A stretch of DNA of 64,000 bases from Rebecca billardiae RCC1528 (lineage: Eukaryota; Protista; Haptophyta). The stretch lies in NCBI GenBank assembly GCA_965240325.2, contig OZ251241.1, positions 1,054,001 to 1,118,000 on the forward strand, read 5' to 3'. How positions within the stretch are numbered: position 1 is the first letter of the stretch; every line of letters starts with the position of its first letter. Shown one piece after another: positions 36,319 through 56,835 of the stretch. Position numbers and translations under genes: made by a program. Below the pieces are notes generated by a model, which had not been told where the DNA came from, ran no database searches, and saw only the letters and a program-made list of their open reading frames with translations.

Positions 36319-36362
<44 letters not shown>

Positions 36363-38240: not shown

Positions 38241-39078
38241 GAGTGCCGCGCGAGGTCAGGCCGCACGATCGGTGTCCGCCATGCTGACCGGATGGCCCGC
38301 GGGCCGCGGCGGCTTTCGGCGCCAGCTCATTCCGATGGCGGCCGAACACGCCGCAGGTGATGATGCCGCGCGCCGCGGACGTGGACGTGCTCGTCGACGA
38401 CGATGGCGGGCTGGAGTTCTCGGACGACAGCCTGTCTGAGTCTGATGCGATGCATCACAAAGCCGTCGCCGCCGGCTCTTCCCACGCGAAGGTGGCGTTT
38501 CGCACCGCGCCGAGCGGCCCATGCCGGCCAAGGCAGCAGTCGATATCTGACGACATTCACGGTGGGAGTGTGGCGGCAGCGGACACCGAACCTCGTGTAT
38601 CCGGGATGTAGCTCGTCAAGGGGGAACCCTCTCGACTCTGTGTTCCAGTGTGTAAGCGCGCCCGGGGCATCACTTGGCTCCGCCGGTCCGATCAGACCGA
38701 TGCCATTCCGAGAACTCATCAGCGAGTCTCTGGCAGATGCGCGGGGCCCACATTGCACTCAGTGGCACATGCACATGCGCATGTGATGCGCGCTGACTCT
38801 CGCCGCGCGCCTATCCTGCTGCCGCGCGTGTGCTTGTATTTGTTTAGTGCGTGCATCATGCAGCGTCGGATAAAGTCACACTCCCGGCCCCGCCCGGGTC
38901 TGACACGGTGTCAGTCAGTGTCACACCGCCGTCGAGATCGACCGAATCATCGATCTGCTGATTCGATTTCGGATCTGATTGCGTGACGATGAGTTCTGAT
39001 TGTGATAGTAGTTGTCGTTGATACAGTGATACTCACTACTGCAATAACACTTAACAGGCTTCCGCCTAAGGCGGCTCA

Positions 39079-40710
39079 TCAGCCGTGGCCCGTACTGTAA
39101 TTTAGTACTACCGTACTGTTCGACGACGTGCGCTGCCGCTTGCTCATGCTTTCGCCGCCCTGCTCTGGTGGATGCGCATGAGCGAGGTCCACCGCCACGG
39201 CCTCCAACAGCGTGCACGCCTCGCGCGGATCCTCGTCCTTGAACGCACTCCAACGCGCCTGGCTCACGATCGCCTTCAAGTTGGCCTTCACCACAGCGCG
39301 CGCTGCCTCGCTGATCCGAGAGCCAGCTCCCGCCGCGCGCGCGTGCCGCAGGATGTCCAGGCAGTTGTCCGCGTCCAGCACGCCCAGCACCGCCTCCTCG
39401 CACCGACCCGCCACGAGGCCCAGCAGGTCAGCACCAGCGGGCGCAGAGGCCGCCTCGGCTGCGTCTGGCCCAGACGGCCGTGCGCCTTGCACGCTCCCAG
39501 CAGCACCCTCGCCGGGCGGCTGCAGCTTGCACGCCAGCCGAAGCAGCTCGAGCACCTCGCCCGGCTCGGTGGGCAGCTCGGCGCGACCGCCCGCGTGCAG
39601 CTGGCGCAGCAGCGCCTCGTGCGCCGCCGAGCTGAAGTCAGGGTCGGCGTCCACCTCGCGCCGGCTGCCTTCGGCCAGGCCGCCGCCCAGCTGCCGCGCA
39701 AAGTAGCTCGAGCCGTGGATCAGGAGCGCGCGGCTGCCGCCCAGCTGCGTGCCGTCCGCGCAGCGGAACACCACGTCGTGCCGCGCGGCGGACGGCTCGC
39801 TCACCAACGCCGACTGCGACAGCAGCTGCTCGTGCGACGCGCGCAGCTCGTCGACCTCCTGCGCCAGCCGGGCGCACTGCGCGCCCGCCGAGCGCAGCGC
39901 GCGCTCACAGCACTCGTCATCGCGCACGAGCTTCTTCGCAGCCTGCATGCAGGCGTCCCCGCTGTCGGCGCCGGCGTCGTGGTGCGCACGACGCAGCAGC
40001 GCGCCCACGGCCTGCTCGTTGCTCGCCACCTCCGCGCGGCCGGCGGCAGAGCGTGTGAGGATATCGATCGCACGCTGTGCCCGTGTTCGAGTGGTACAGT
40101 CGGGTGAGCACGCCGTTGAAGCGAGCGGAGGGATGGCGCCAGCCTCGATGATTGGCACGCGGAGCGAGTCTGACCTGGCGAGGTTGCCGAGAGCACCCGC
40201 TGCACGGCCCAGAGCCTGCGCATTGGTGCTGGACTTGAGCAGCGCGACGAGCGGCGAGATCGCGCCAGAGTCGGCGATCGGTGCGCGGAGCGAGTCTGAC
40301 ACGGCAAGGTTGGCGAGAGCACCCGCCGCTTCCTTGCACGTCCCTACAGCATCGGTTGTCTGCAGCATGGCCACGAGGGGCTGCACCGCGCCAGCCCGTG
40401 ACACGCAGCCAGGGACATGGGCGGCGATCCTCGCGAGAGCTGCCGCCGCAGCTGCCCGAACGCTTGCTTCGCCCGATGCTCCCAGCATGCGCACGAGGGC
40501 TGCGATCGAGCCGCCTCGCTCGATTGCATCGGGCTCTTCGAGCGTGCGGCCCGGCCTCGGAACGCAGAATGGCGTGAGCGCGCTCACGATGGCCTCGTCA
40601 TCACGTGGCGTCGCCTCGAGCGCGCGCACGAGGTCAGAGAGCGTGGCGGGGCCGATAGCCGCCGAGGCGAGTGACCCAGCGCGAACCACGGCCTTCTGGA
40701 CACACGTCAT
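39079..40710 (-). CDS. ARM-repeat/BTB-BACK protein, copy 1 (1 variable ARM module, extended C-terminus)
   Basis: ARM repeats (AGAIxPLVALL...AAGALGNLA), BTB (HDVVFRCADG..SSYF..GGLAE) and BACK-like (CEEAVL..DADNCLDIL). Start placed by alignment with the paralogs. Confidence 0.9.
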   Translation of the reverse strand: MTCVQKAVVRAGSLASAAIGPATLSDLVRALEATPRDDEAIVSALTPFCVPRPGRTLEEPDAIERGGSIAALVRMLGASGEASVRAAAAAALARIAAHVPGCVSRAGAVQPLVAMLQTTDAVGTCKEAAGALANLAVSDSLRAPIADSGAISPLVALLKSSTNAQALGRAAGALGNLARSDSLRVPIIEAGAIPPLASTACSPDCTTRTRAQRAIDILTRSAAGRAEVASNEQAVGALLRRAHHDAGADSGDACMQAAKKLVRDDECCERALRSAGAQCARLAQEVDELRASHEQLLSQSALVSEPSAARHDVVFRCADGTQLGGSRALLIHGSSYFARQLGGGLAEGSRREVDADPDFSSAAHEALLRQLHAGGRAELPTEPGEVLELLRLACKLQPPGEGAAGSVQGARPSGPDAAEAASAPAGADLLGLVAGRCEEAVLGVLDADNCLDILRHARAAGAGSRISEAARAVVKANLKAIVSQARWSAFKDEDPREACTLLEAVAVDLAHAHPPEQGGESMSKRQRTSSNSTVVLNYSTGHG

Positions 40711-41604
40711 GTGGCCGCCGCAGTGGGCAGCCGCTCGTCGCCGCTCGAACGACAAGCGCTCTCGATCGACGATGATCGAGGGCTGACGATGGGGCGCATA
40801 GCCAACCGTCGTCGTTGTCGCCTGGCGGCGGCGGCCGGCGGAGCCCTCCACCGCCCGGACTCTGGGTGAACGGTCACTCCACGGCCGGGGAAGCAGCGCG
40901 ATGGCGGGCTGGAGCTCTAGGACCGCAGCCGTCTGTCTCTCTGACCCGATGCATGGCGAAGCCTTCGCTGCCCAGCCCTTGCGCTGGCAGTAAGCCGGTA
41001 TCTAGCTAGTGAGTAGCTGATGCAGCCACCGGGACCGCGCGCAGGTGGTCAGTGCCCGTGCCGAATCAGGTCCGAACCAGCTGCAGGCCGAACGGCCGAA
41101 GCACTGGGTCGATGACAGGAACTGACGACGTTCACAGCAGGAGTGTGGCGGCAGTGGGCACCAAGCTACGTGAACAACTTTCTCCGGGATGTGCGTCGCG
41201 ATGGCGGAGCTCTCTCGACTCTGCGTCAGGTGTACTCTCCACACGCCCAGGGCCGGGCACCGCCCGTTCTCATCATCGGCCCTCGTGGCCTCGCGATCGT
41301 TCGACGACGAGGAAGCGGTCATCATCGATCGTCCTTCGTATTGAACGTACTACGCAACAATACTTGTTGCCGTCGCATCGAAAGCCTCATCATGCGCGAC
41401 GGGCGGATGAATCATCAAGCAACTTCGGTTGCACACCTACTAACTGTTATACTAGCAGGCTGGCCGTACGGACGTCAGGACCGTGCCGCTCGTCAATAGA
41501 CATCCGACGGTTCGGGACTGTCAGTCGGAGTCGGACACTCGATCGATCCGATGTAACTGATTACGAGGCTCTGCGCCGTCGCCAGTGATGCTGCGCTCTG
41601 ATGC

Positions 41605-43449
41605 TTAAGACGTGCGCTGCCGCTTGCTCGTGCTGTCGTCGCGCTGCTCTGGCGGCTGCACACGAGCGAGGTCCACCGCCACTGCCTGCATCAGCATGCA
41701 TGCCTCGAGCGAATCCTCGCGCATGAACGCACTCCAACGCTCATCACTCACGATTGCCTCCAAGTTGGCCTTCACCACAGCGCGCGCTGCCTCGCTGATC
41801 CGAGAGCCAGCTCCCGCCGCGCGCGCGTGCCGCAGGATGTCCAGGCAGTTGTCCGCGTCCAGCGCGCCCAGCACCGCCTCCTCGCACCGACCCGCCACAA
41901 GGCCCAGCAGGTCACCGCCAGCGCGCGCAGAGGCCGCCTCGGCTGCGTCTGGCCCAGACGGCCGTGCGCCTTGCGCGCTCCCAGCAGCAGCACCCTCGCC
42001 GGGCGGCTGCAGCTTGCACGCCAGCCGAAGCAGCTCGAGCACCTCGCCCGGCTCGGTGGGCAGCTCGGCGCGACCGCCCGCGTGCAGCTGGCGCAGCAGC
42101 GCCTCGTGCGCCGCCGAGCTGAAGTCAGGGTCGGCGTCCACCTCGCGCCGGCTGCCTTCGGCCAGGCCGCCGCCCAGCTGCCGCGCAAAGTAGCTCGAGC
42201 CGTGGATCAGGAGCGCGCGGCTGCCGCCCAGCTGCGTGCCGTCCGCGCAGCGGAACACCACGTCGTGCCGCGCGGCGGACGGCTCGCTCACCAACGCCGA
42301 CTGCGACAGCAGCTGCTCGTGCGACGCGCGCAGCTCGTCGACCTCCTGCGCCAGCCGGGCGCACTGCGCGCCCGCCGAGCCCAGCGCGCGCTCACAGCAC
42401 GCGTCGTCACGCACGAGCTTCTTCGCAGCCTGCATGCAGGCGTCCCCGTCGGCCGCGCCAGCGTCGTGGTGCGCACGACGCAGCAGCGCGCCCACGGCCT
42501 GCTCGTTGCTCGCCACCGCCACGCGGCCGGCGGCCGAGCTGGTGAGGGCATCGATCGCACGCTGTGCCCGTGTTCGAGTGGTACGGTCGGGTGAGCACGC
42601 CGCTGACGCGAGCGGAGGGATGGCGCCAGCCTCGACGATTGGCGCGCGGAGCGAGTCTGACTTGGCGAGGTTGTGGAGAGCACCCGCTGCACGGCCCAGA
42701 GCGTACCCATCGGTGCTGAACTTGAGCAGCGCGACGAGCGGTGTGATCGCGCCAGCCTCGGCGATCGGTGCCCGGAGCGAGTCTGACCTGGCGAGGTTGC
42801 CGAGAGCACCCGCTGCATTGCCCAGAGCGTGCGCATCGGTGCTGGACTTGAGCAGCGCGACGAGCGGTGCGATCGCACCAGCCTCGGCGATCGGTGCGCG
42901 GAGTGAGTCTGACCTGGCGAGGTTGCCGAGAGCACCCGCTGCATGGCCCAGAGCCTGCGCATTGGTGCTGGACTTGAGCAGCGCGACGAGAGGTGTGATC
43001 GCACCAGCGTCGGCGATCGGTGCGCTGAGCGAGTCAAAGGTGGCAAGGCTGCAGAGAGCAAGAGCTGCCTCCTTGTGCATCCCTTCAGCATCGGTTGTCT
43101 GCAGCATGGCCACGAGGGGCTGCACCGCGCCAGCCCATGACATGCAGCCAGGGACATGGGCGGCGATCCTCGCGAGAGCTGCCGCCGCAGCTGCCCGAAC
43201 GCTTGCTTCGCCCGATGCTCCCAGCATGCGCACGAGGGCTGCGATCGAGCCGCCTCGCTCGATGGCATCGGGCTCTTCGAGCTCGCGGCCCATCCTCGGA
43301 ACGCAGAACGGCGTGAGGGCGCTCACGATGGCCTCGTCATCACGTGGCGTCGCCTCGAGCGCGCGCACGAGGTCAGAGAGCGTGGCGGGGCCGATGGCCG
43401 CCGAGGCGAGCGACCCAGCGCGAGCCAGGGCCTCCTGGACAAATCCCAT
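41605..43449 (-). CDS. ARM-repeat/BTB-BACK protein, copy 2 (3 variable modules)
   Basis: Same architecture as copy 1; 614 aa from MGFVQEAL. Confidence 0.9.
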   Translation of the reverse strand: MGFVQEALARAGSLASAAIGPATLSDLVRALEATPRDDEAIVSALTPFCVPRMGRELEEPDAIERGGSIAALVRMLGASGEASVRAAAAAALARIAAHVPGCMSWAGAVQPLVAMLQTTDAEGMHKEAALALCSLATFDSLSAPIADAGAITPLVALLKSSTNAQALGHAAGALGNLARSDSLRAPIAEAGAIAPLVALLKSSTDAHALGNAAGALGNLARSDSLRAPIAEAGAITPLVALLKFSTDGYALGRAAGALHNLAKSDSLRAPIVEAGAIPPLASAACSPDRTTRTRAQRAIDALTSSAAGRVAVASNEQAVGALLRRAHHDAGAADGDACMQAAKKLVRDDACCERALGSAGAQCARLAQEVDELRASHEQLLSQSALVSEPSAARHDVVFRCADGTQLGGSRALLIHGSSYFARQLGGGLAEGSRREVDADPDFSSAAHEALLRQLHAGGRAELPTEPGEVLELLRLACKLQPPGEGAAAGSAQGARPSGPDAAEAASARAGGDLLGLVAGRCEEAVLGALDADNCLDILRHARAAGAGSRISEAARAVVKANLEAIVSDERWSAFMREDSLEACMLMQAVAVDLARVQPPEQRDDSTSKRQRTS

Positions 43450-44321
43450 GCCGCCGCCGCTGGGCAAGCCGCTCGTCGCCGCTCGATCGACAAGCGCTCG
43501 ATCGACGACCAAGCGTGAGCGCCGCAGCGAACCGTCGTCTTCACCGGAGCCCTCCCCGGCCCGGACTCTGGGCGAACTCGGAGAAGAACGGTCGCTCCAC
43601 GGCCGGGGAAGCAGCGCGATGGCGGGCCGGAGTTCTAGGACGGCAGCCCGTCTCTCTGATCCGATGCATGGCGAAGCCTTCGCCGCCCGGCCCTTGCGCT
43701 GGCAGTAAGCCGCTATCAAGCTACTGAGTAGCTGATGCAGCCACCGGGACCGCGCGCAGGTGGTCAGTGCCCGTGCCGAATCAGGTCCGAACCAGCTGCA
43801 GGCCGAACGGCCGAAGCACTGGGTCGATGACAGGAACTGACGACGTTCACAGCAGGAGTGTGGCGGCAGTGGGCACCAAGCTACGTGAACAACTTGCTCC
43901 GGGATGTGCGTCGCGATGGCGGAGCTCTCTCGACTCTGCGTCAGGTGTACTCTCCACACGCCCAGGGCCGGGCACCGCCCGTTCTCATCATCGGCCCTCG
44001 TGGCCTCGCAATCGTTCGACGACGAGGAAGCGGTCATGATCGATCGTCCTTAGTATTGAAACGTACTACGCAACAATACTGTACTTGTTGCCGTCGCATC
44101 GAAAGCCTCATCATGCGCGACGGGCGGATGAATCATCAAGCAACTTCGGTTGCACACTCCTACTAACTATATTGGCTAGGCTGGCCTACTGGCGGAGTCG
44201 GCGGACCGTGCCCGCTCGTCAATAGACATCGTTCGGGACTGTCAGTCGGAGTCGGACACTCGATCCGATGTAACTGATTACGAGGCTCTGCGCCGCCGCC
44301 AGTGATGCTGCGCTCTGATGC

Positions 44322-46544
44322 TTACGACGTGCGCAGCCGCTTGCTCGTGCTGTCGCCACGCTGCTGCTCTGACGACTGAGCACGAGCTAAGTCGGCCGCC
44401 ACGGCCTCCAACAGCGTGAACGCCTCGAGCGGATCCTCGCGCTTGAACGCACCCCAACGTTCATGGCTCACGATCGCCTCGAAGTTGGCCTTCACCACAC
44501 CGCGCGCTGCCTCGCTGATCCGAGAGCCAGCTCCCGCCGCGCGCGCGTGCCGCAGGATGTCCAGGCAGTTGTCCGCGTCCAGCACGCCCAGCACCGCCTC
44601 CTCGCACCGACCCGCCACGAGGCCCAGCAGGTCACCGCCAGCGCGCGCAGAGGCCGCCTCGGCTGCGTCTGGCCCAGACGGCCGTGCGCCTTGCGCGCTC
44701 CCAGCAGCACCCTCGCCGGGCGGCTGCAGCTTGCACGCCAGCCGAAGCAGCTCGAGCACCTCCCCCAGCTCGGTGGGCAGCTCGGCGCGACCGCCCGCGT
44801 GCAGCTGGCGCAGCAGCGCCTCGTGCGCCGCCGAGCTGAAGTCAGGGTCGGCGTCCACCTCGCGTCGGCTGCCCTCGGCCAGGCCGCCGCCCAGCTGCCG
44901 CGCAAAGTAGCTCGAGCCGTGGATCAGGAGCGCGCGGCTGCTGCCCAGCTGCGTGCCGTCCGCGCAGCGGAACACCACGTCGTGCCGCGCGGCGGACGGC
45001 TCGCTCACCAACGCCGACTGCGACAGCAGCTGCTCGTGCGACGCGCGCAGCTCGTCCACCTCCTGCGCCAGCCGGGCGCACTGCGCGCCCGCCGAGCCCA
45101 GCGCGCGCTCACAGCACGCGTCGTCACGCACGAGCTTCTTCGCAGCCTGCATGCAGGCGTCCCCGCTGTCTTGGTGCGCACGGCGCAGCAGAGCGCCCAC
45201 GGCCTGCTCGTTGCTCGCCACCGCCGCGCGGCCGGCGGCAGAGCGTGTGAGGGCATCGATCGCGTGCTGTGCCCGTGCTCGAGTGGTAGGGTCGGGTGAG
45301 CACGCCGCTGAAGCGAGCGGAGGGATGGCGCCAGCCTCGATGATTGGTGCGCAGAGCGAGTCTGACTCGGCGAGGTTGCAGAGAGCACCCGCTGCATCGC
45401 CCAGAGTATCCGTATCGGTGCTGGACGTGAGCAGCGCGACGAGCGGCGAGATCGCGCCAGCCTCGGCGATCTGTGCGCGGAGCGAGAGATCGCAAGCAAG
45501 GTTGCCGAGAGCACCCGCTGCCTCGCCCAGAGTATCCGTATCGGTGCTGGACGTGAGCAGCGCGACGAGCGGCGAGATCGCGCCAGCCTCGGCGATCTGT
45601 GCGCGGAGCGAGAGATCGCAAGCAAGGCTGCAGAGAGCACCCGCTGCCTCGCCCAGAGTATCCGTATCGGTGCTGGACGTGAGCAGCGCGACGAGCGGCG
45701 AGATCGCGCCAGAGTCGGCGATTGGCGCGCGGAGCGAGGGATGAAAAGCAAGGTTGCCGAGAGCACCCGCTGCATTGCACAGAGTGTTCGCATCGGTGCT
45801 GGACGCCAGCAGCGCGACGAGCGGCGAGACTGCGCCAGCCTCGGCGATCGGTGCGCGGAGCAAGGGATCGCCAGCAAGGCAGGAGAGAGCACCCGCTGCA
45901 TTGCAGAGAGCGTTCGCATCGGTGCTGGACTTGAGCAGCGCGACGAGCGGCGAGACTGCGCCAGCCTCGGCGATCGGTGCGCGGAGCAAGGGATCGCCAG
46001 CAAGGCAGGAGAGAGCACCCGCTGCATTGCAGAGAGCGTTCGCATTGGTGCTGGACGTGAGCAGCGCGACGAGCGGCGAGATCGCGCCAGCCTCGACGAT
46101 CGGTGCGCGGAGCGAGGGATCGCAAGCAAGGGTGAAGAGAGCACTCGCTGCACTGCCCAGAGCGTTCGCATCGGTGCTGGATGTCAGCAGCGCGACGAGC
46201 GGTGAGATCGCGCCAGCGTCGGCGATCGGTGCGCGGAGCGAGTCAAACGTGGCAAGGTTGCAGAGAGCAAGAGCTGCCGCCGCAGCTGCCTGAACGCTTG
46301 CTTCGCCCGATGCTCCCAGCATGCGCACGAGGGTTGCGATCGAGCCGCCTCGCTCGATTACATCGGGCTCTTCGATCGTGCGGCCCGGCCTCGGAACGCA
46401 GAATGGCGTGAGGGCGCTCACGATGGCCTCGTCATCACGTGGCGTCGCCTCGAGCGCGCGCACGAGGTCAGAGAGCGTGGCGGAGCCGATGACCGCCGAG
46501 GCGAGTGACCCAGCGCGAGCCAGGGCCTCCTGGACACACGTCAT
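44322..46544 (-). CDS. ARM-repeat/BTB-BACK protein, copy 3 (7 variable modules; 114-bp in-frame deletion)
   Basis: Same architecture; 740 aa from MTCVQEAL. Confidence 0.9.
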   Translation of the reverse strand: MTCVQEALARAGSLASAVIGSATLSDLVRALEATPRDDEAIVSALTPFCVPRPGRTIEEPDVIERGGSIATLVRMLGASGEASVQAAAAAALALCNLATFDSLRAPIADAGAISPLVALLTSSTDANALGSAASALFTLACDPSLRAPIVEAGAISPLVALLTSSTNANALCNAAGALSCLAGDPLLRAPIAEAGAVSPLVALLKSSTDANALCNAAGALSCLAGDPLLRAPIAEAGAVSPLVALLASSTDANTLCNAAGALGNLAFHPSLRAPIADSGAISPLVALLTSSTDTDTLGEAAGALCSLACDLSLRAQIAEAGAISPLVALLTSSTDTDTLGEAAGALGNLACDLSLRAQIAEAGAISPLVALLTSSTDTDTLGDAAGALCNLAESDSLCAPIIEAGAIPPLASAACSPDPTTRARAQHAIDALTRSAAGRAAVASNEQAVGALLRRAHQDSGDACMQAAKKLVRDDACCERALGSAGAQCARLAQEVDELRASHEQLLSQSALVSEPSAARHDVVFRCADGTQLGSSRALLIHGSSYFARQLGGGLAEGSRREVDADPDFSSAAHEALLRQLHAGGRAELPTELGEVLELLRLACKLQPPGEGAAGSAQGARPSGPDAAEAASARAGGDLLGLVAGRCEEAVLGVLDADNCLDILRHARAAGAGSRISEAARGVVKANFEAIVSHERWGAFKREDPLEAFTLLEAVAADLARAQSSEQQRGDSTSKRLRTS

Positions 46545-47351
46545 GTGGCCGCCGCAGTGGGCAGCCGCTCGTCGCCGCTCGAACGACAAGCGCTCTCGAT
46601 CGACGATGAGCGAGCGAGCGGTGAGCAAGCGCGCAGCCAACCGGCGTCGTTGGACTTGATTCCTTTGGTTGGAGCGGAGCCCTCCACCGCCCGGACTCTG
46701 GGTGAACGGTCGCTCCACGGCCGGGGAAGTAGCGATGGCCGATGGCGGACTAGAGTTCTAGGACGACCGCCTGTCTCTCTGACCCGATGCATGGCGAAGC
46801 TTTCGCCGCCCGGCCCTTCCGCTGGCAGTATGCCACTACCTAGACAGTGAGTAGCTGATGCAGCCGCCGGGACCGCGCGCAGTTGGTCAGTGCCCGAGCC
46901 GAATCAAGGTCCGAACCAGCTGCAGGCTGAACGGCCGAAGCACTGGGTCGATGACAGGAACTGACGACGTTCACAGCTGGAGTGTGGCGGCAGCGGGCAC
47001 CAAGCTGCGTGAACAACTTTCTCCAGGATGTGCCTGGTGATGGCGGAGCACTCTCGAATCCGCGTCAGGTGTACTGTCAGCACGCCCAGGGCCGGGCACC
47101 GACGATCGTCAATTTTCATCACCCCTCGTCCTCGATCGTTCGACGACGCGCCACGCGCACGCGATCATCGTCCTCAGTGAAACGTAATCAGTATTTATTG
47201 TCGTCGCATCGAAAGCCTCATCATGCGACGAGATGAATCATCAAGCCAGTACGAGTGCGCACCTAAAATCAGAATCGTCGGACATCATCGATCTGACTGA
47301 TGACAGATGCTGAGGCTCCGCGCCGCCGCCAGTGATGCTGCGCGCTGATGC

Positions 47352-49433
47352 TTACGACGTGCGCTGCCGCTTGCTCGTGCTGTCGTCGCGCTGCTCTGAC
47401 GACTGAGCACGAATGACGTCCGCCGCCACGGCCTGCATTAGCATGCATGCCTCGAGCGGATCCTCGCGCATGAACGCACTCCAACGCTCATGGCTCACGA
47501 TCGTCTCGAAGTTGGCCTTCACCACACCGCGCGCTGCCTCGCTGATCCGAGAGCCAGCTCCCGCCGCGCGCGCGTGCCGCAGGATGTCCAGGCAGTTGTC
47601 CGCGTCCAGCACGCCCAGCACCGCCTCCTCGCACCGACCCGCCACGAGGCCCAGCAGGTCACCGCCAGCGCGCGCAGAGGCCGCCTCGGCTGCGTCTGGT
47701 CCAGACGGCCGTGCGCCTTGCGCGCTCCCAGCAGCACCCTCGCCGGGCGGCTGCAGCTTGCTCGCCAGCCGAAGCAGCTCGAGCACCTCGCCCGGCTCGG
47801 TGGGCAGCTCGGCGCGACCGCCCGCGTGCAGCTGGCGCAGCAGCGCCTCGTGCGCCGCCGAGCTGAAGTCCGGGTCGGCGTCCACCTCGCGCCGGCTGCC
47901 CTCGGCCAGGCCGCCGCCCAGCTGCCGCGCAAAGTAGCTCGAGCCGTGGATCAGGAGCGCGCGGCTGCCGCCCAGCTGCGTGCCGTCCGCGCAGCGGAAC
48001 ACCACGTCGTGCCGCGCGGCGGACGGCTCGCTCACCAACGCCGACTGCGACAGCAGCTGCTCGTGCGACGCGCGCAGCTCGTCGACCTCCTGCGCCAGCC
48101 GGGCGCACTGCGCGCCCGCCGAGCCCAGCGCGCGCTCACAGCACGCGTCGTCACGCACGAGCTTCTTCGCAGCCTGCATGCAGGCGTCCCCGCTGTCTTG
48201 ATGCGCACGGCGCAGCAGCGCGCCCACGGCCTGCTCGTTGCTCGCCACCGCCGCGCGGCCGGCAGCCGAGCTGGTGAGGGCATCGATCGCACGCTGTGCC
48301 CGTGCTCGAGTGGTAGGGTCGGGTGAGCACGCCGCTGAAGCGAGCGGAGGGATGGCGCCAGCCTCGACGATTGGCGCGCAGAGCGAGTCTGACCTGGCGA
48401 GGGTGCGGAGAGCACCCGCTGCATTGCCCAGAGCGTACGCATCGGTGCTGGACTTGAGCAGCGCGACGAGCGGTGTAATCGCGCCAGCCTCGGCGATTGG
48501 TGCGCGGAGCGGGGGATCGGCAGCAAGGTTGCCGAGCGCACCCGCTGCATTGCCCAGAGCCTTCGCATTGGTGCTGGACGTGAGCAGCGCGACGAGCGGC
48601 GAGATCGCGCCAGCTTCGGCGATCGGTGCGCGGAGCGAGAGATCGCAAGCAAGGTTGCAGAGAGCACCCGCTGCCTCGCCCAGAGTATCCGTATCGGTGC
48701 TGGACGTCAGCAGCGCGACGAGCGGCGAGATCGCGCCAGAGTCGGCGATTGGCGCGCGGAGCGAGGGATCCAAAGCAAGGTTGCCGAGAGCACCCGCTGC
48801 CTCGCCCAGAGTGATCGCATCGGTGCTGGACGTCAGCAGCGCGACGAGCGGCGAGATCGCGCCAGCCTCGGCGATCGGTGCGCGGAGCGAGAGATCGCAA
48901 GCAAGGTTGCCGAGAGCACCCGCTGCATTGCCCAGAGTGCCCGTATCGCTGCTGGACTTGAGCAGCGCGACGAGCGGTGCAATCGCGCCAGCCTCGGCGA
49001 TCGGTGCGCAGAGCGGGAGATCGGAAGCGAGATTGGCGACAGCACGCGCCGCTGCCCTGTGCGTCCATTCAGCATCGGTTGTCTGCAGCATGGCCACGAG
49101 GGGCTGCACCGCGCCAGCCTGTGACACGCAGCCAGGGATATGGGACGCAATGCCCCCAAGAGCTGCCGCCGCAGCTGCCCGAACGCTTGCTTCGCGTGAT
49201 GCTCCCAGCATGCGCACAAGCGCTGCCACCGAGCCGCCTTGCTCGATGGCATCGGGCTCTTCGAGTTTGCCGCCCGTCATCGAAACGCAGAATGGCGTGA
49301 GGGCGCTCACGATGGCCTCGTCATCACGTGGCGTCGCCTCGAGCGCGCGCACGAGGTCAGAGAGCGTGGTGGGGCCGATGACCGCCGAGGCGAGTGCCCC
49401 AGCGCGAGCCACGGCCTCCTGGACCAATTCCAT
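47352..49433 (-). CDS. ARM-repeat/BTB-BACK protein, copy 4 (5 variable modules)
   Basis: Same architecture; 693 aa from MELVQEAV. Confidence 0.9.
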   Translation of the reverse strand: MELVQEAVARAGALASAVIGPTTLSDLVRALEATPRDDEAIVSALTPFCVSMTGGKLEEPDAIEQGGSVAALVRMLGASREASVRAAAAAALGGIASHIPGCVSQAGAVQPLVAMLQTTDAEWTHRAAARAVANLASDLPLCAPIAEAGAIAPLVALLKSSSDTGTLGNAAGALGNLACDLSLRAPIAEAGAISPLVALLTSSTDAITLGEAAGALGNLALDPSLRAPIADSGAISPLVALLTSSTDTDTLGEAAGALCNLACDLSLRAPIAEAGAISPLVALLTSSTNAKALGNAAGALGNLAADPPLRAPIAEAGAITPLVALLKSSTDAYALGNAAGALRTLARSDSLCAPIVEAGAIPPLASAACSPDPTTRARAQRAIDALTSSAAGRAAVASNEQAVGALLRRAHQDSGDACMQAAKKLVRDDACCERALGSAGAQCARLAQEVDELRASHEQLLSQSALVSEPSAARHDVVFRCADGTQLGGSRALLIHGSSYFARQLGGGLAEGSRREVDADPDFSSAAHEALLRQLHAGGRAELPTEPGEVLELLRLASKLQPPGEGAAGSAQGARPSGPDAAEAASARAGGDLLGLVAGRCEEAVLGVLDADNCLDILRHARAAGAGSRISEAARGVVKANFETIVSHERWSAFMREDPLEACMLMQAVAADVIRAQSSEQRDDSTSKRQRTS

Positions 49434-50252
49434 GCCGCTGCCGCTGGGCAGCCGCTCGTCGCCGCTCGATCGACAAGCGAAAGCGCTGCTCGATCGACGA
49501 TGTCCGAGCGCTGACAGTCCGCTGAGCAGCGCGCAGCCAACCGTCCTCATCGTCGCCCGGAGCCCTCCACCCGGACTCTGGGTGAACGGTCGCTCCACGG
49601 CCGGAGAAGCAGCGCGATGGCGGGCTGGAGTTCTAGGACGACCGCCCGTCTCTCTGACCCGATGCATGGCGAAGCTTTCGCCGCCCGGCCCTTCCGCTGG
49701 CAGTATGCCACTGCCTAGACAGTGAGTAGCTGATGCAGCTGCCAGTAGCGCGCGCAGTTGGTCAGTGCCCGTGCCGAATCAAGGTCCGAACCAGCTGCAG
49801 GCCGAACGGCCGAAGCACTGGGTCGATGACATGAACTGACGACGTTCACAGCGGGAGTGTGGCGGTCGTGGGCACCAAGCTACGTGCACAACTTTCTCCA
49901 GGATGTGCCTGGTGATGGCGGAGCACTCTCGACTCTGCGTCAGGTGTACTGTCAGCACGCCCAGGGCCGGGCACCGCCCGTTCTGACGATCATCATCAAT
50001 TTAGTCATCACCGCCCCTCGGCCTCGTCCTCGATCGTTCGACGACGCGGTCATCGTCCTCAGTGAAACGTAATCAGTATTTATTGTCGTCGCATCGAAAG
50101 CCTCATCATGCGACGAGATGAATCATCAAGCCAGTACGAGTGCGCACCTAAAATCAGAATCGTCGGACATCATCGATCTGACTGATGACAGATGCTATGC
50201 TGAGGCCGTCCGCGCCGCCGCCAGTGATGCTGCGCAATCTGCGCTCTGGTGC

Positions 50253-52220
50253 TTAAGACGTGCGCTGCCGCTTGCTCGTGCTGTCGTCGCGCTGCTCTGG
50301 CGGCTGCACACGAGCGAGGTCCACCGCCACTGCCTGCATCAGCATGCATGCCTCGAGCGAATCCTCGCGCATGAACGCACTCCAACGCTCATCACTCACG
50401 ATCGCCTCCAAGTTGGCCTTCACCACAGCGCGCGCTGCCTCGCTGATCCGAGAGCCAGCTCCCGCCGCGCGCGCGTGCCGCAGGATGTCCAGGCAGTTGT
50501 CCGCGTCCAGCACGCCCAGCACCGCCTCCTCGCACCGACCCGCCACAAGGCCCAGCAGGTCACCGCCAGCGCGCGCAGAGGCCGCCTCGGCTGCGTCTGG
50601 TCCAGACGGCCGTGCGCCTTGCGCGCTCCCAGCAGCACCCTCGCCGGGCGGCTGCAGCTTGCACGCCAGCCGAAGCAGCTCGAGCACCTCGCCCGGCTCG
50701 GTGGGCAGCTCGGCGCGACCGCCCGCGTGCAGCTGGCGCAGCAGCGCCTCGTGCGCCGCCGAGCTGAAGTCCGGGTCGGCGTCCACCTCGCGCCGGCTGC
50801 CCTCGGCCAGGCCGCCGCCCAGCTGCCGCGCAAAGTAGCTCGAGCCGTGGATCAGGAGCGCGCGGCTGCCGCCCAGCTGCGTGCCGTCCGCGCAGCGGAA
50901 CACCACGTCGTGCCGCGCGGCGGACGGCTCGCTCACCAACGCCGACTGCGACAGCAGCTGCTCGTGCGACGCGCGCAGCTCGTCCACCTCCTGCGCCAGC
51001 CGGGCGCACTGCGCGCCCGCCGAGCCCAGCGCGCGCTCACAGCACGCGTCGTCACGCACGAGCTTCTTCGCAGCCTGCATGCAGGCGTCCACGCCGGCCG
51101 CGCCAGCGTCGTGGTGCGCACGACGCAGCAGCGCGCCCACGGCCTGCTCGTTGCTCGCCATTGCCGCGCGGCCGGCGGCCAAGCTGGTGAGGGCATCGAT
51201 CGCACGCTGTGCCCACTTTCGAGTGTCCAGGTCGGGTGAGCACGCTGCTGAAGCGAGCGGAGGGATGGCGCCAGCCTCGACGATTGGTCCGCACAGCGAG
51301 TCTGACCTGGCGAGGTTGCAGAGAGCAGCCGCTGCCTCGCCCAGAGTATCCGTATCGGTGCTGGACGTGAGCAGCGCGACGAGCGGTGAGATCGCGCCAG
51401 CGTCGGCGATCGGTGCGCAGAGCGGGGGATCACCAGCAAGGTTGAAGAGAGCACTAGCTGCACTGCCCAGAGTGTTCGCATCGGTGCTGGACTTCAGCAG
51501 CGCGACGAGAGGTGTGATCGCACCCGCCTCGGCGATCGGTGTGCGGAGTGAGTCTGACCTGGCGAGGTTGCGGAGAGCACACGCTGCATTGCCCAGAGTG
51601 ATCGCATTGGTGCTGGACGTGAGCAGCGCGATGAGCGGCGAGATCGCGCCAGCCTCGGCGATCGGGGCACGGAGCGAGAGATCGCAAGCAAGGGTGCCGA
51701 GAGCAGCCGCTGCACTGCCCAGAGCGGTCGCATCGGTGCTGGACTTCAGCAGCGCGACGAGCGGTGTGATCGCGCCAGCGTCGGCGATCGGTGCGCGGAG
51801 CGAGTCAAAGGTGGCAAGGCTGCAGAGAGCAAGAGCTGCCGCCTTGTGCATCCCTTCAGCATCGGTTGTCTGCAGCATGGCCACGAGGGGCTGCACCGCG
51901 CCAGCCCGTGACATGCAGCCAGGGACATGGGCGGCGATCCTCGCGAGAGCTGCCGCCGCAGCTGCCCGAACGCTTGCTTCGCGTGATGCTCCCAGCATGC
52001 GCACGAGGGTTGCGACCGAGCCGCCTCGCTCGATGGCATCGGGCTCTTCGATCGTGCGGCCCGGCCTCGGAACGCAGAATGGCGTGAGCGCGCTCACGAT
52101 GGCCTCGTCATCACGTGGCGTCGCCTCGAGCGCGCGCACGAGGTCAGAGAGCGTGGCGGGGCCGATAGCCGCCGAGGCGAGTGACCCAGCGCGAGCCAGG
52201 GCCTCCTGGACAAATCCCAT
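50253..52220 (-). CDS. ARM-repeat/BTB-BACK protein, copy 5 (4 variable modules)
   Basis: Same architecture; 655 aa from MGFVQEAL. Confidence 0.9.
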   Translation of the reverse strand: MGFVQEALARAGSLASAAIGPATLSDLVRALEATPRDDEAIVSALTPFCVPRPGRTIEEPDAIERGGSVATLVRMLGASREASVRAAAAAALARIAAHVPGCMSRAGAVQPLVAMLQTTDAEGMHKAAALALCSLATFDSLRAPIADAGAITPLVALLKSSTDATALGSAAAALGTLACDLSLRAPIAEAGAISPLIALLTSSTNAITLGNAACALRNLARSDSLRTPIAEAGAITPLVALLKSSTDANTLGSAASALFNLAGDPPLCAPIADAGAISPLVALLTSSTDTDTLGEAAAALCNLARSDSLCGPIVEAGAIPPLASAACSPDLDTRKWAQRAIDALTSLAAGRAAMASNEQAVGALLRRAHHDAGAAGVDACMQAAKKLVRDDACCERALGSAGAQCARLAQEVDELRASHEQLLSQSALVSEPSAARHDVVFRCADGTQLGGSRALLIHGSSYFARQLGGGLAEGSRREVDADPDFSSAAHEALLRQLHAGGRAELPTEPGEVLELLRLACKLQPPGEGAAGSAQGARPSGPDAAEAASARAGGDLLGLVAGRCEEAVLGVLDADNCLDILRHARAAGAGSRISEAARAVVKANLEAIVSDERWSAFMREDSLEACMLMQAVAVDLARVQPPEQRDDSTSKRQRTS

Positions 52221-53069
52221 GCCGCCGCCGCAGTGGGCAGCCGCTCGTCGCCGCTCGATCGACAAGCGCTCTCGTATCGACGATGAGCGAGTGCTGAGCA
52301 GCGCGCAGCCAACCGTCGTCGTGGCTGCGCGCGCCCGGAGCCCTCCGCCCGGACCGGCTGGGCGAACAGAACGGTCGCTCCACGGCCGGAGAAGCAGCGC
52401 GATGGCGGGCTGGAGCTCTAGGACGGCAGCCGTCTGTCTCTCTGACCCGATGCATGGCGAAGCCTTCGCTGCCCGGCCCTTGCGCTGGCAGTAAGCCGGT
52501 ATCTAGCTAGTGAGTAGCTGATGTAGCCACCGGGACCGCGCGCAGGTGGTCAGTGCCCGTGCCGAATCAGGTCCGAACCAGCTGCAGGCCGAACGGCCGA
52601 AGCACTGGGTCGATGACAGGAACTGAGGACGTTCACAGCAGGAGTGTGGCGGCAGTGGGCACCAAGCTACGTGAACAACTTTCTCCGGGATGTGCGTCGC
52701 GATGGTGGAGCACTCTCGACTCTGCGTCAGGTGCACTCCCCACTCACGCCCAGGGCCGGGCACCGCCCGTTCTCATCGTCATCGCCCCTCGTGGCCTCGC
52801 GATCGTGCGACGACGAGGAAGCGGTCATCATCGATCGTCCTTATTGAAACGGAACTACTACGCAATATTTGCTGCCGTCGCATCCGGAAAGCCTCATCAT
52901 GCGCGACGGGATGAATCATCAAGCAGCTTCGGTTGCACACCTACTATTGTAATATAGGCTGGCTACTCCGGGACTACGGGACTATCGAGTGATCGTCGGA
53001 CACTCGATCCGATGACTGATTACGAGGCTCTGCGCCGCCGCCAGTGTCAGTGATGCTGCGCTCTGATGC

Positions 53070-54662
53070 TTACGACGTGCGCAGCCGCTTGCTCGTGCTG
53101 TCATCGCCCTGCTCTGACGACTGAGCACGAACGACGTCCGCCGCCACTGCCTCCAACAGCGTGCACGCCTCGAGCGGATCCTTGTTCTTGAACGCACTCC
53201 AAAGCTCAGACTGGCTCACGATCGCCTCGAAGTTGGCCTTCACCACACCGCGCGCTGCCTCGCTGATCCGAGAGCCAGCTCCCGCCGCGCGCGCGTGCCG
53301 CAGGATGTCCAGGCAGTTGTCCGCGTCCAGCACGCCCAGCACCGCCTCCTCGCACCGACCCGCCACGAGGCCCAGCAGGTCACCACCAGCGCGCGCAGAG
53401 GCCGCCTCGGCTGCGTCTGGCCCAGAAAGCAGTGCGCCTTGCGCGCTCCCAGCAGCACCCTCGCCGGGCGGCTGCAGCTTGCACGCCAGCTGAAGCAGCT
53501 CGAGCACCTCGCCCAGCTCGGTGGGCAGCTCGGCGCGCCCGCCCGCGTGCAGCTGGCGCAGCAGCGCCTCGTGCGCCGCCGAGCTGAAGTCCGGGTCGGC
53601 GTCCACCTCGCGCCGGCTGCCCTCGGCCAGGCCGCCGCCCAGCTGCCGCGCAAAGTAGCTCGAGCCGTGGATCAGGAGCGCGCGGCTGCCGCCCAGCTGC
53701 GTGCCGTCCGCGCAGCGGAACACCACGTCATGCCGCGCGGCGGACGGCTCGCTCACCAACGCCGACTGCGACAGCAGCTGCTCGTGCGACGCGCGCAGCT
53801 CGTCCACCTCCTGCGCCAGCCGGGCGCACTGCGCGCCCGCCGAGCGCAGCGCGCGCTCACAGCACGCATCGTCACGCACGAGCTTCTTCGCAGCCTGCAT
53901 GCAGGCGTCCCCGCCGGCCGTGCCAGCGTCGTGGTGCGCACGACGCAGCAGCGCGCCCACTGCCTGCTCGTTGCTCGCCACCGCTGCGCGGCCGACGGCT
54001 GAGCTGGTAAGGGCATCGATCGCGTGCTGTGCCCGTGCTCGAGTGGTAGGGTCGGGCGAGCACATCGCTGAAGCAAGCGGCGGGATGGCGCCAGCCTCGA
54101 TGATTGGCACGCGGAGCGAGTATGACCTGGCAAGGTTGCGGAGAGCACTTGCTGCACCACACAGAGCGCTTGCATCGGTGCTGGAGTTGAGCAGCGCGAC
54201 GAGCGGTGTGATCGCGCCAGCCTCGGCGATCGGAGCGCGGAGCGGGGGATCGTAAGCAAGGTAGAAGAGAGCAAGAGCAGCCTCCTTGCACGTCCCTTCA
54301 GCATCGGTTGTCTGCAGCATGGCCACGAGGGGCTGCACCGCGCCAGCCCGTGACACGCAGCCAGGAACATGGGCCGCGATCCTCGCAAGAGCTGCCGCCG
54401 CAGCTGTCCGAACGCTTGCTTCGCGTGATGCTCCCAGCATGCGCACAAGCGTTGCGACCGAGCCGCCTCGCTCGACTGCATTGGGCTTCTTGAGTTTGCT
54501 GCCCGGCATCGGAACGCAGAACGGCGTGAGCGCGCGCACGATGGCATCATTATCACGTGGCGTCGTCTCGAGCGCGCGCACGAGGTCAGAGAGCGTGGCG
54601 GGGCCGATGACTGCCGAGGTGAGTGAGTCGACGCGAGCTTCGGCCTCCTGGATAAATGCCAT
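53070..54662 (-). CDS. ARM-repeat/BTB-BACK protein, copy 6 (1 variable module; unique upstream region)
   Basis: Same architecture; 530 aa from MAFIQEAE. Divergent from the SHPRH-like gene. Confidence 0.9.
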   Translation of the reverse strand: MAFIQEAEARVDSLTSAVIGPATLSDLVRALETTPRDNDAIVRALTPFCVPMPGSKLKKPNAVERGGSVATLVRMLGASREASVRTAAAAALARIAAHVPGCVSRAGAVQPLVAMLQTTDAEGTCKEAALALFYLAYDPPLRAPIAEAGAITPLVALLNSSTDASALCGAASALRNLARSYSLRVPIIEAGAIPPLASAMCSPDPTTRARAQHAIDALTSSAVGRAAVASNEQAVGALLRRAHHDAGTAGGDACMQAAKKLVRDDACCERALRSAGAQCARLAQEVDELRASHEQLLSQSALVSEPSAARHDVVFRCADGTQLGGSRALLIHGSSYFARQLGGGLAEGSRREVDADPDFSSAAHEALLRQLHAGGRAELPTELGEVLELLQLACKLQPPGEGAAGSAQGALLSGPDAAEAASARAGGDLLGLVAGRCEEAVLGVLDADNCLDILRHARAAGAGSRISEAARGVVKANFEAIVSQSELWSAFKNKDPLEACTLLEAVAADVVRAQSSEQGDDSTSKRLRTS

Positions 54663-54843
54663 GTGCTGATGTGGCCGTCGTAGGACAAGCCGTCGTCGTC
54701 GGTGGGCAGCTGGTCGTTTGGAGTTGTTCTGCAATCCGGTCCAACCGTCATCGTCGTGTTGCCCACCCGGACTGGGTCCGGGTGGTGGAGCGCGGTGTCG
54801 CGGATCTCCGCCTCCGTGTCGTCGCGCCCGCGCGTGCACGGCC

Positions 54844-56775: not shown

Positions 56776-56835
<60 letters not shown>

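Follow-up and report, generated by a model that had tools for sequence, protein, structure and literature searches.

The 64-kb stretch of DNA analysed here (the window) harbors, at positions 39079-54662, six intact minus-strand ARM-BTB paralogs of the pavlovophyte Rebecca billardiae RCC1528, referred to below as G1 to G6. The genes, their domains and core modules, the spacers between them and the homogenised portion of their C-termini are located as follows.

39079-40710, minus strand: ARM-BTB gene G1, 543 aa, with one core module (40162-40287)
40054-40515, 39514-39780 and 39250-39405, minus strand: ARM, BTB and 3-box/BACK domains of G1
41605-43449, minus strand: ARM-BTB gene G2, 614 aa, with three core modules (42649-43026)
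42541-43254, 42001-42267 and 41734-41889, minus strand: ARM, BTB and 3-box/BACK domains of G2
44322-46544, minus strand: ARM-BTB gene G3, 740 aa, with seven core modules (45354-46235)
44718-44984 and 44454-44609, minus strand: BTB and 3-box/BACK domains of G3
47352-49433, minus strand: ARM-BTB gene G4, 693 aa, with five core modules (48381-49010)
47745-48011 and 47481-47636, minus strand: BTB and 3-box/BACK domains of G4
50253-52220, minus strand: ARM-BTB gene G5, 655 aa, with four core modules (51294-51797)
50646-50912 and 50382-50537, minus strand: BTB and 3-box/BACK domains of G5
53070-54662, minus strand: ARM-BTB gene G6, 530 aa, with one core module (54114-54239)
53466-53732 and 53199-53357, minus strand: BTB and 3-box/BACK domains of G6
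Within 40711-53069, minus strand: five inter-unit spacers of 807-891 bp, between consecutive genes
47529-48104, minus strand: homogenised BTB-BACK core of G4
39298-39873, 41782-42360 and 44502-45077, minus strand: equivalents of this core in G1, G2 and G3
50430-51005 and 53250-53825, minus strand: equivalents of this core in G5 and G6

All six reading frames run uninterrupted to the stop from a conserved ATG located three codons ahead of V/IQ-E/K-A, which confirms the original prediction of six intact paralogs. Since each frame covers the whole domain architecture, it is plausible that the genes are intronless, as predicted from the frames. The coding indels among the paralogs are all multiples of 3 (3, 12, 42, 114 or 126 nt); for the spacers this holds for only 28% of indels. 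Together with an excess of silent over replacement divergence in the BTB core (pN < pS), this preservation of the frame indicates that the six genes are probably functional. Individual copies differ in detail: the C-terminus of G1 is 14 aa longer than in the other paralogs, and in G3 an in-frame deletion of 114 nt near 46260-46275 has removed the divergent "pre" repeat. G6 is the edge copy, and its upstream DNA bears no relation to the spacers between the genes. No further copy was found elsewhere within the 64-kb window. The genes flanking the array are housekeeping genes, and a search for viral relatives or a viral context of the array found none.

The C-terminal tail reaches 19-20.5 bits against the Pfam BTB model, a borderline result at or just below the curated cut-off of 20.5. 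Its AF2 model (pLDDT 76.5) folds as a BTB domain followed by a 3-box/BACK region, with a 25-residue low-confidence insert between BTB and 3-box (174-198 of the model) and helices at 201-292 with a pLDDT of about 90. Structural searches against the PDB using Foldseek retrieved SPOP, the BTB-BACK of KLHL11 (249 matched columns), KBTBD2-CUL3 and KLHL22-CUL3 with E-values of 4e-6 to 8e-5 and a probability of 1.00, and vaccinia A55-Cul3 was also among the best matches (E range to 2e-4). The matching Swiss-Prot models were plant BTB, BPM/BATH, SPOP and KLHL proteins, and BATH-40/42, SPOP and BPM4 rank high among them. More specifically, HMMER pairs CEEAVLGVLDADNCLDILRHA with the post-BTB helix of KLHL22 (residues 139-161) and aligns GGLAE to GGLKE of KLHL22, which places L-A-E opposite L-K-E. 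The A-E of GGLAEG is kept across the haptophyte family. In the SPOP-Cul3 and KLHL-Cul3 structures, a phi-x-E motif in the alpha3-beta4 loop of the BTB adaptor contacts Cul3, and the L-A-E of the tail is a predicted Cul3 contact of this phi-x-E-like type. As a whole, the Pfam, Foldseek and HMMER results bear out the proposed build, an ARM solenoid followed by BTB-3-box/BACK as in Cul3 substrate adaptors.

The N-terminal solenoid is recognised by the Pfam Arm model with 80-198 bits. In the model of G4, the ARM region has a pLDDT of 94-98 and consists of helices of about 9, 10 and 14 residues per 42-aa repeat. The closest counterparts of the ARM region are consensus-designed ARM proteins (4rv1, E 6e-47), followed by ODAD2, Vac8 and importin-alpha. 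Secondary-structure assignment of this model by DSSP places module positions 25, 29, 32, 35 and 36 on helix 3, with positions 25, 29, 32 and 36 spaced i, i+4, i+7, i+11. Peptide binding by designed ARM proteins mostly maps to helix 3 (PMC10684580). The modules resemble those of dArmRP/OR497 (PDB 4rv1, 5mfm; PMC10684580) in having 42 residues near the ARM consensus, and, as in dArmRP, helix 3 of each module would be predicted to touch about two residues of a peptide bound in extended form. In contrast to dArmRP, the R. billardiae ARM-BTB proteins are encoded by natural genes, the Trp of the natural Trp/Asn ladder is replaced by Gly, Ser, Ala or Cys, and one extra residue lengthens the loop that joins helices 2 and 3; the Asn is kept in 15 of the 21 modules.

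Anchoring on PL[VI]ALL gave 1, 3, 7, 5, 4 and 1 core modules for G1 to G6, 21 in total, exactly the counts of the original prediction, whose 42-aa consensus was likewise correct. Tandem Repeats Finder (TRF) resolved 126-bp arrays of 3.6, 7.6, 5.6 and 4.6 copies. All 21 module peptides differ from one another, with a mean amino-acid identity of 75% (62-98%) across all modules, within-gene means of 0.71-0.83, and best adjacent pairs of 0.90 in G2, 0.98 in G3 and 0.86 in G4. This variation is unevenly distributed: 17 of the 42 positions are invariant, and identity is 86% outside nine hypervariable codons versus 32% at them. Furthermore, nearest-neighbour modules sit in other genes and at other positions. 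The fifth module of G3 is nearest to the third of G4 (98.4%), the fifth of G4 to the second of G2 (94%), and the fourth of G4 to the second and third of G3.

The spacers align with one another at 84-93% identity and fall into two groups, G1/G2/G5 and G3/G4, which shows that tandem duplication took in the entire 2.5-3 kb unit, spacers included. The paralogs are mosaic, with triplet runs tests at p<=0.001 in seven of eight comparisons; the PHI recombination test was not significant (p 0.08-0.13). These mosaic tracts and the non-colinear nearest-neighbour modules uphold the proposed exchange between paralogs, although unequal crossing-over and gene conversion yield such module "shuffling" in any tandem repeat array. 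Across the BTB-BACK core of about 575 bp, pN between paralogs is 0-0.03 and pS 0.01-0.06, compared with a silent-site divergence of 0.12-0.16 in the flanking coding sequence. Homogenisation even at silent sites points to gene conversion. The C-terminus had been described as near-identical, which is accurate for this core and overstated for the C-terminal part as a whole, where paralogs share 93.5-97.6% of nucleotides and only 89-95% of amino acids. The N-cap, previously regarded as conserved, is in fact the least conserved non-repeat part, with 84-96% nucleotide identity and a dN/dS of about 0.8-1.0, a value that partly relaxed constraint following duplication could likewise explain. Over whole genes, dN/dS is 0.6-1.0.

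Counting changes on the module tree gave 112 replacement and 42 silent changes, of which 74 and 10, respectively, fall in the nine hypervariable codons. At the a-priori ladder, comprising the equivalents of dArmRP E30/W33/N37, all 23 changes are replacements and none is silent (omega 2.7, p=2e-4). For the six codons of the helix-3 face, three of which were picked after the data had been seen, omega is 3.3 (p=3e-9), and the post-hoc top nine codons retain p=5e-5 in a neutral simulation with a correction for their post-hoc selection. In a tree-free test on ten disjoint nearest-neighbour pairs, pN/pS was 2.7 across the face (p=9e-5) and 0.51 at the remaining codons. When only the three strictly a-priori ladder codons are considered on these pairs, the enrichment is no more than about 1.9-fold, by hand count and at roughly p 0.04. 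Codon models favor M2a over M1a for the modules (2dlnL=56; omega2=5.2 for 18% of codons), with positions 12, 25, 29, 32, 35 and 39 selected in consensus numbering. However, the same test is significant in both control regions, the C-part (2dlnL=16, 3% of sites) and the N-cap (22.5, 14% of sites), and therefore adds little alone; recombination among paralogs may inflate it. Possible constraint on silent sites in this 68% GC genome would also raise omega. Taken together, replacements are concentrated on one face of helix 3 with dN>dS, in agreement with the predicted variability on the putative peptide-binding helix, and the picture of a constant, putatively ligase-docking part joined to a variable ARM array is supported.

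This BTB type is confined to a few haptophyte-like sequences, with 28 matches among 1.84 billion representative proteins, the best of them 42-48% identical. The closest BTB relatives share about 40% identity and come from Diacronema lutheri and Pavlovales CCMP2436, where they are single genes at both loci looked up. Their repeats are 24-71% alike, versus up to 86-98% in the array, and near-identical repeats are absent there. In line with the original prediction, the literature searched yielded no account of such genes in haptophytes, nor was a diversifying pattern described there for the combination of ARM and BTB domains; the fast-diversifying pattern itself is already known from other adaptor and immune-receptor families.

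Judged from domain build and modelled fold, the ARM-BTB-BACK proteins most likely serve Cullin-3 ubiquitin ligases as substrate adaptors. We consider it probable (about 0.7) that the array is a lineage-specific, diversifying tandem family of such adaptors. The C-terminal BTB and 3-box would dock and dimerise on Cul3, as suggested by the fold and the phi-x-E-like L-A-E, while the solenoid, by homology to importin-alpha and designed ARM proteins, would bind an extended peptide in a groove lined by helix 3. The array probably evolves through three processes in the germline. Entire 2.5-3 kb units are duplicated; 126-bp modules undergo unequal crossing-over or slippage, by which their number and order would change; and paralogs convert one another, which would create mosaics and keep the BTB-BACK core nearly identical. 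Selection would favor amino-acid change at the groove positions of helix 3. The outcome would be a set of adaptors sharing their effector end and differing in predicted peptide specificity, with foreign or endogenous targets.

Mis-assembly of a repetitive locus has next to no probability as the source of the array or its module counts. Repeats of 126 bp at 76-98% identity within 2.5-3 kb units at 84-97% are hard for short-read assembly, but no two of the 21 modules and no two spacers have the same sequence, the array contains zero Ns, and the frame is kept in every copy. Furthermore, contigs of 151-422 nt from the only public runs that contain this DNA match unique positions with 0-1 differences, and one such match (45278-45470) crosses a cap/module junction. 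It is also quite unlikely that these are ordinary young tandem paralogs drifting under relaxed constraint around a single endogenous function, like ARMC5 or ARIA. In that case, repeat-number changes and mosaics would be selectively neutral consequences of unequal crossing-over and gene conversion, and recombination, codon bias and the post-hoc picking of sites would have produced a spurious omega>1. The whole-gene dN/dS, the significant likelihood-ratio tests in control regions and the clear mosaicism all suit such drift, and ARMC5-type adaptors have defined endogenous substrates, RNA polymerase II and SREBF (PMC9226510, PMC9462479, PMC11758996). Drift does not sit well, however, with replacements so uneven that about nine positions hold two thirds of them with silent change there near nil, with an enrichment that matches helix-3 periodicity and holds both in tree-free disjoint pairs and under the corrected neutral simulation, or with a strictly kept reading frame.

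The family could alternatively encode germline-encoded, intracellular immune-like receptors that direct foreign, fast-evolving proteins, for instance of giant viruses, to Cul3-dependent degradation, with an arms race behind helix-3 diversification and module-number turnover; we regard this as unlikely. The omega>1 signal where binding is predicted, next to a constant end that would dock Cullin, and the lineage-specific expansion would agree with it, as would the resemblance to fungal NLR repeat dynamics (PMC4986451) and the nematode MATH-BTB/F-box pattern, which prompted the same hypothesis (PMC4334554). In contrast, neither viral relatives nor a viral context was found, housekeeping genes flank the array, endogenous conflicts or subfunctionalisation also give positive selection on a binding face, and the control regions' tests are significant as well. 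An innate-immune or restriction system in which a modular ARM region, diversified through repeat exchange and helix-3 positive selection, recognises viral or parasite peptides and passes their bearers to the proteasome is a doubtful role for this pavlovophyte adaptor family. If true, it would represent a ubiquitin-ligase-based counterpart of NLR/LRR repertoires in pavlovophyte algae, a lineage for which we know of no immune receptors.

The diversifying adaptor family can be compared with several known systems. Its likeness to VLRs and TALEs is conceptual only: there is no incomplete germline gene and there are no donor cassettes. Somatic assembly of the VLR type was rejected, as the window holds six complete ORFs, no stray modules in the spacers and no other copy; with complete germline ORFs and no cassette donors, nothing points to it. 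The resemblance to plant ARIA/ABAP1 stands for domain order, ARM then BTB, but not for specific affinity, as neither appears among the 30 highest-ranking Swiss-Prot models matched to the tail, a list led by other Arabidopsis BTB proteins. To our knowledge, ARIA and ABAP1 form small conserved families without near-identical repeats.

ARMC5 likewise carries N-terminal ARM repeats followed by a C-terminal BTB domain, and is an animal CUL3 adaptor for RPB1 and SREBF whose ARM region binds the substrate and whose BTB domain binds CUL3 (PMC9226510, PMC9462479, PMC11758996). The Pfam model ARM_ARMC5 (PF24768) scores above cut-off in three of the six genes (G3-G5). This model also matches ARM proteins at large, Vac8-like proteins and kinases included, and orthology was rejected because PF24768 is unspecific and the structural matches listed for the tail, from the PDB and Swiss-Prot alike, do not include ARMC5. 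Moreover, ARMC5 is one conserved gene, whereas the R. billardiae genes form a diversifying array.

Fungal NLRs carry WD40, ANK or TPR repeats of high internal conservation, defined by an 85% identity criterion, and share with the array similar repeats, concerted evolution by exchange within and between paralogs, and variation in number (PMC4986451). A further likeness is positive selection acting on a handful of positions in each repeat that lie on the binding surface (predicted here). The mean module identity of 75% lies under the 85% criterion save for the best adjacent pairs, and identity as an NLR was rejected, since NACHT/NB-ARC had no Pfam match and the effector end is BTB-BACK.

The closest precedent, omitted from the original prediction as were the fungal NLR repeats, is the selection described for MATH-BTB and F-box proteins of nematodes and plants. 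These are tandem, lineage-specific expansions of cullin adaptors, like the one proposed here, with positive selection in the substrate-binding domain (Thomas 2006 via PMC4334554, PMC8120010) and a conserved cullin-binding domain (predicted here); degradation of foreign proteins is a proposed reading there, too (PMC4334554). The two differ in host lineage, the ARM-BTB array being from a haptophyte, and in the recognition module, a single MATH or FTH/FBA domain there and an ARM solenoid of 1-7 modules here. In its apparent mode of evolution, the array parallels both the MATH-BTB/F-box expansions of nematodes and plants and the repeat dynamics of fungal NLRs.

The array comprises six minus-strand open reading frames (ORFs) within 39079-54662, each running to a stop from a conserved ATG that lies three codons before V/IQ-E/K-A:

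39079-40710, minus strand: G1, ARM-BTB paralog, 543 aa, 1 core module
41605-43449, minus strand: G2, ARM-BTB paralog, 614 aa, 3 core modules
44322-46544, minus strand: G3, ARM-BTB paralog, 740 aa, 7 core modules
47352-49433, minus strand: G4, ARM-BTB paralog, 693 aa, 5 core modules
50253-52220, minus strand: G5, ARM-BTB paralog, 655 aa, 4 core modules
53070-54662, minus strand: G6, ARM-BTB paralog, 530 aa, 1 core module

The proteins begin with a helical N-terminal cap (N-cap, ~137 aa), whose last element is a "pre" ARM repeat of divergent sequence (PLVAML). A run of 42-aa core modules anchored by PL[VI]ALL (21 in total) comes next, then a C-cap repeat that is likewise divergent (PPLAS), a linker of ~60 aa and a C-terminal tail of ~240 aa. 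The 126-bp arrays were recovered by TRF with 3.6, 7.6, 5.6 and 4.6 copies. ORFs, module counts and TRF agree with the original prediction of a six-gene array in its counts, consensus and coordinates; no further family copies were found in the window. The GC content is 66-74% across the array and 61-81% in 2-kb windows of the window. Upstream of the conserved ATG the ORFs extend by a further 15-198 codons (198 in G2), and because these lengths vary between copies, the extensions were set aside as non-coding.

In G3 the pre repeat is missing owing to an in-frame deletion of 114 nt (46260-46275), which joins AAAAAALA to LCNLATFDS. The junction falls between AALA motifs that occupy helix 3 in two consecutive repeats, and the deletion is a footprint of repeat-to-repeat recombination that kept the solenoid register. 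At the 3' end of G1 (39079-39120), 14 codons follow beyond the stop of the other five paralogs (…KRQRTS then SNSTVVLNYSTGHG), and the conserved C-terminal K-R-x-R is therefore not terminal in G1. All six paralogs carry 2.2 copies of a 20-bp unit (GCGCCAGCCGAGC.CACCGC) at the same place, in the linker encoding ALGSAGAQCARLAQ (39861-39904, 42348-42391, 45065-45108, 48092-48135, 50993-51036 and 53813-53856).

The array is surrounded by ordinary nuclear genes:

54718-62292, plus strand: SHPRH-like SNF2/RING helicase with SNF2, SHPRH helical, RING and Helicase_C domains
35617-38349, minus strand: RRM protein, 910-aa ORF (79% GC) with one RRM domain
31021-34548, minus strand: pyruvate carboxylase, single long ORF

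By its domains, the very GC-rich (~80%) ORF of 2524 aa at 54718-62292 is a putative SHPRH/RAD5-like ligase-helicase. As listed, it overlaps the 5' end of G6; its real start is probably further downstream. The region 35617-38349 holds overlapping long ORFs on both strands, as expected at such GC content. For the pyruvate carboxylase, the best matches are an MMETSP transcript (79% identity) and the Diacronema lutheri enzyme (78%), with at most 60% identity in all other matches; the genome is therefore that of a pavlovophyte haptophyte (Pavlovophyceae), of a species with no entry in the protein databases.

Pfam Arm scores range from 80 to 198 bits in G1-G6, and ARM_ARMC5 is above cut-off in G3-G5. 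The closest solved sequence to the ARM region is the consensus-designed ARM protein OR497 (4rv1, E 6e-47), followed by ODAD2/ARMC4, Vac8, other designed ARM proteins and importin-alpha. A full-length model of G4 reached a pLDDT of 94-98 in the ARM region, with helices of ~9, 10 and 14 residues per 42-aa repeat. For the tail, Pfam BTB gave 19-20.5 bits, with the cut-off at 20.5, and the match to the KLHL22 BTB was weak (E 0.038). GGLAE of the tail aligned to GGLKE of KLHL22, at the phi-x-E position, and CEEAVLGVLDADNCLDILRHA to the helix that follows the BTB. Modelled by AF2 from 28 sequences (pLDDT 76.5), the tail has three strands and helices that lead into an extension of helices, and residues 174-198 form a disordered insert. 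The Foldseek neighbours of this model are SPOP, KLHL11 BTB-BACK, KBTBD2-CUL3, KLHL22-CUL3 and vaccinia A55-Cul3 (E 4e-6 to 2e-4). The 30 best matches among Swiss-Prot models include plant BTB proteins, KLHL41, BATH-40/42, RCBTB, SPOP and BPM4, with none to ARMC5, ARIA or ABAP1. Orthology to ARMC5 or ARIA was rejected, given the generic nature of the ARM matches and with neither protein among the best structural matches of the tail. The tail is predicted to bind Cul3 and the ARM groove to bind peptide, and the six paralogs would have different specificities.

Inter-unit spacers of 807-891 bp align at 84-93% identity, in two groups (G1/G2/G5 and G3/G4), and therefore the whole unit was duplicated. 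In G1-G5, the ~350 bp upstream of the ATG (e.g. 49434-49800 for G4) are much more conserved between units than the distal spacer and nearly free of indels; this stretch, which the edge copy G6 lacks, is a candidate common promoter or 5' UTR. The units are also mosaic: G3 resembles G4 in spacer and tail and G5 in the N-cap, while G2 switches from G1-like to G5-like. Runs tests on 8 triplets, of which 7 gave p<=0.001, were used in place of the PHI test for recombination, which was not significant on few informative sites (28 and 45). In the BTB-BACK core (~575 bp), pN is 0-0.03 and pS 0.01-0.06, as compared with a pS of 0.12-0.16 in cap, linker and extreme C-terminus. As both pN and pS collapse in the core, homogenisation by gene conversion largely accounts for the near-identical sequence of the "constant" end, with purifying selection in addition. 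Coding indels (3, 12, 42, 114 and 126 nt) are all multiples of 3, as against 28% of spacer indels, and the reading frames are therefore maintained by selection.

All 21 modules are distinct, with identities of 76-98% (nt) and 62-98% (aa), and sort broadly into a K...RSDS and a T...CDLS type. A module's nearest neighbour is often found in a different gene and at a different position. One such pair is G3m5-G4m3 (fifth module of G3, third of G4; 98.4%), and further neighbours in other genes are G3m4-G4m2, G3m1-G5m1, G3m7-G5m4 and G4m5-G2m2. G3m2-G3m3, at 96%, is an in-situ duplication, and G4m4 groups with G3m2/3 despite its position after a G3m5-like module. This pattern is the expected product of unequal crossing-over and conversion. 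The module exchange of the original prediction is one that takes place in the germline, over evolutionary time.

Averaged over whole regions, dN/dS is 0.83 in the N-cap, 0.58 in the part after the modules (C-part) and 0.98 in the modules. Within the module, 17 of 42 positions are invariant, and positions 12, 19, 25, 29, 32, 35, 36, 39 and 41 are rich in replacements, with third codon bases nearly unchanged. On the module tree, we counted 112 replacement and 42 silent changes over all codons. The nine most variable codons account for 74 and 10 of these (omega ~3 relative to the module-wide silent rate), with an omega of 0.48 for the remainder; a neutral simulation that likewise took the nine most variable of 42 codons did not once attain 74 replacements (p=5e-5). 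The ladder defined a priori (positions 29, 32 and 36) shows 23 replacement and 0 silent changes (omega 2.7; p=2e-4); these positions correspond to E30, W33 and N37 of designed armadillo repeat proteins and to the Trp/Asn ladder of importin-alpha. For the six codons on the predicted helix-3 face, three of which were chosen post hoc from the data, omega is 3.3 (p=3e-9). Ten disjoint nearest-neighbour pairs, which need no tree, gave 33 replacement and 2 silent changes at the face codons (pN/pS 2.7; p=9e-5) and a pN/pS of 0.51 elsewhere; by hand count, the strict three-codon ladder reached only ~1.9-fold on these pairs. DSSP of the G4 model places positions 25, 29, 32, 35 and 36 in helix 3 and 39-41 in the next loop, and the i, i+4, i+7, i+11 spacing of 25, 29, 32 and 36 defines one face of this helix. 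In designed ARM proteins, peptide binding occurs mostly at helix 3 (PMC10684580).

Codon site models (GY94, M1a vs M2a) also favoured selection on the modules (2dlnL=56; omega2=5.2 for 18% of codons). The two control regions were significant in this test as well, with 22.5 for the N-cap, where several of the sites belong to helix 3 of its pre repeat, and 16 for the C-part, at 3% of sites. Recombination may inflate the test. Given the significant controls, it was rejected as decisive, and counting tests were given more weight. GC-biased codon usage may depress dS, yet dS is close to the divergence of the spacers (7-16%). Replacements are concentrated on helix 3, where dN exceeds dS by several counts; with these reservations, the results lean towards genuine diversifying selection on the groove.

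Searches with the full-length protein were swamped by generic ARM proteins (<=45% identity), and relatives were defined with the tail alone as the informative query. Exhaustive HMMER against 1.84 billion representative proteins gave 28 matches, the best 42-48% identical, among them a D. lutheri BTB protein (KAG8461085), an "armadillo-type protein" of Pavlovales CCMP2436 (KAJ1624498) and MMETSP transcripts. ARM repeats precede the tail in 7 of 10 scanned relatives. The family shares the motifs HDVxFRCADG..LG.SR, DPDFSSAAH.ALLRQLHA and the C-terminal K-R-x-R, which could be a nuclear localisation signal. In two genomes, the relatives are single genes amid housekeeping genes, with no tandem array:

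L003 (D. lutheri locus), 10001-10900: closest tail relative, BTB-only protein, 299 aa
L002 (Pavlovales CCMP2436 locus), 7274-10387: closest tail relative, ARM-BTB gene, 434 aa

The latter has introns, since its 434 aa are spread over 3.1 kb. Adjacent repeats are 24-71% identical in the relatives versus up to 86-98% in the array; judged by public data, the expansion is therefore lineage-specific, and so are the near-identical repeats. A metagenome scan with a single protein query found no related loci; with an alignment query it found one weak locus (L001, 33% identity), and the same query found no relatives in viral contigs. Only two public sequencing runs, unrelated to each other, matched, and weakly (shares 0.05-0.21); seven of their contigs, 151-422 nt long, align within 44000-49900. 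Some of these contigs differ at 0-1 positions from unique parts of G3 (e.g. 44744-44894, 45278-45470), and others are more divergent (13 differences over 151 nt, 40 over 422). Sequenced samples therefore contain this alga or near relatives of it, along with additional members of the family.

The architecture, tandem duplication, mosaicism, homogenised core and frame preservation of the array are shown by the sequence, and the array is best read as a diversifying, lineage-specific family of predicted Cul3 substrate adaptors. Haptophytes, which account for much of the sea's primary production and face heavy pressure from viruses, are a group for which very little is known about the recognition of intracellular parasites. 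The constant, predicted Cul3-docking end combined with a fast-changing, modular and putatively peptide-binding solenoid makes the array a concrete, testable candidate for parasite recognition; an immune role as such we consider unlikely. At minimum, the array is a clear example of repeat exchange and selection generating adaptor diversity. If its targets are endogenous, it is still a clean case of one domain in concerted evolution while its neighbour diversifies. Near-consensus modules varying at groove positions are a natural counterpart of designed armadillo peptide binders, and their variation could help to work out how ARM modules determine peptide specificity.

Adaptors that sense foreign proteins are not a new idea. 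For the MATH-BTB and F-box families of nematodes and plants such detection has already been proposed, and there positive selection acts on the substrate-binding domain but spares the one that binds cullin (PMC4334554, PMC8120010). In its repeat dynamics, the array matches fungal NLR repeat domains (PMC4986451). The original interpretation is supported in part: the architecture and module exchange hold, whereas the likeness to VLR and TALE systems is conceptual only; all six genes are complete and give no sign of somatic assembly. Our literature search found no account of a variable armadillo solenoid with BTB-BACK in haptophytes, as the original prediction had supposed; the one paper to mention haptophytes, armadillo repeats and BTB together deals with HECT ligases. 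Compared with these systems, the novelty lies in the combination: a near-consensus armadillo solenoid as the variable part, joined to BTB-BACK, in a haptophyte.
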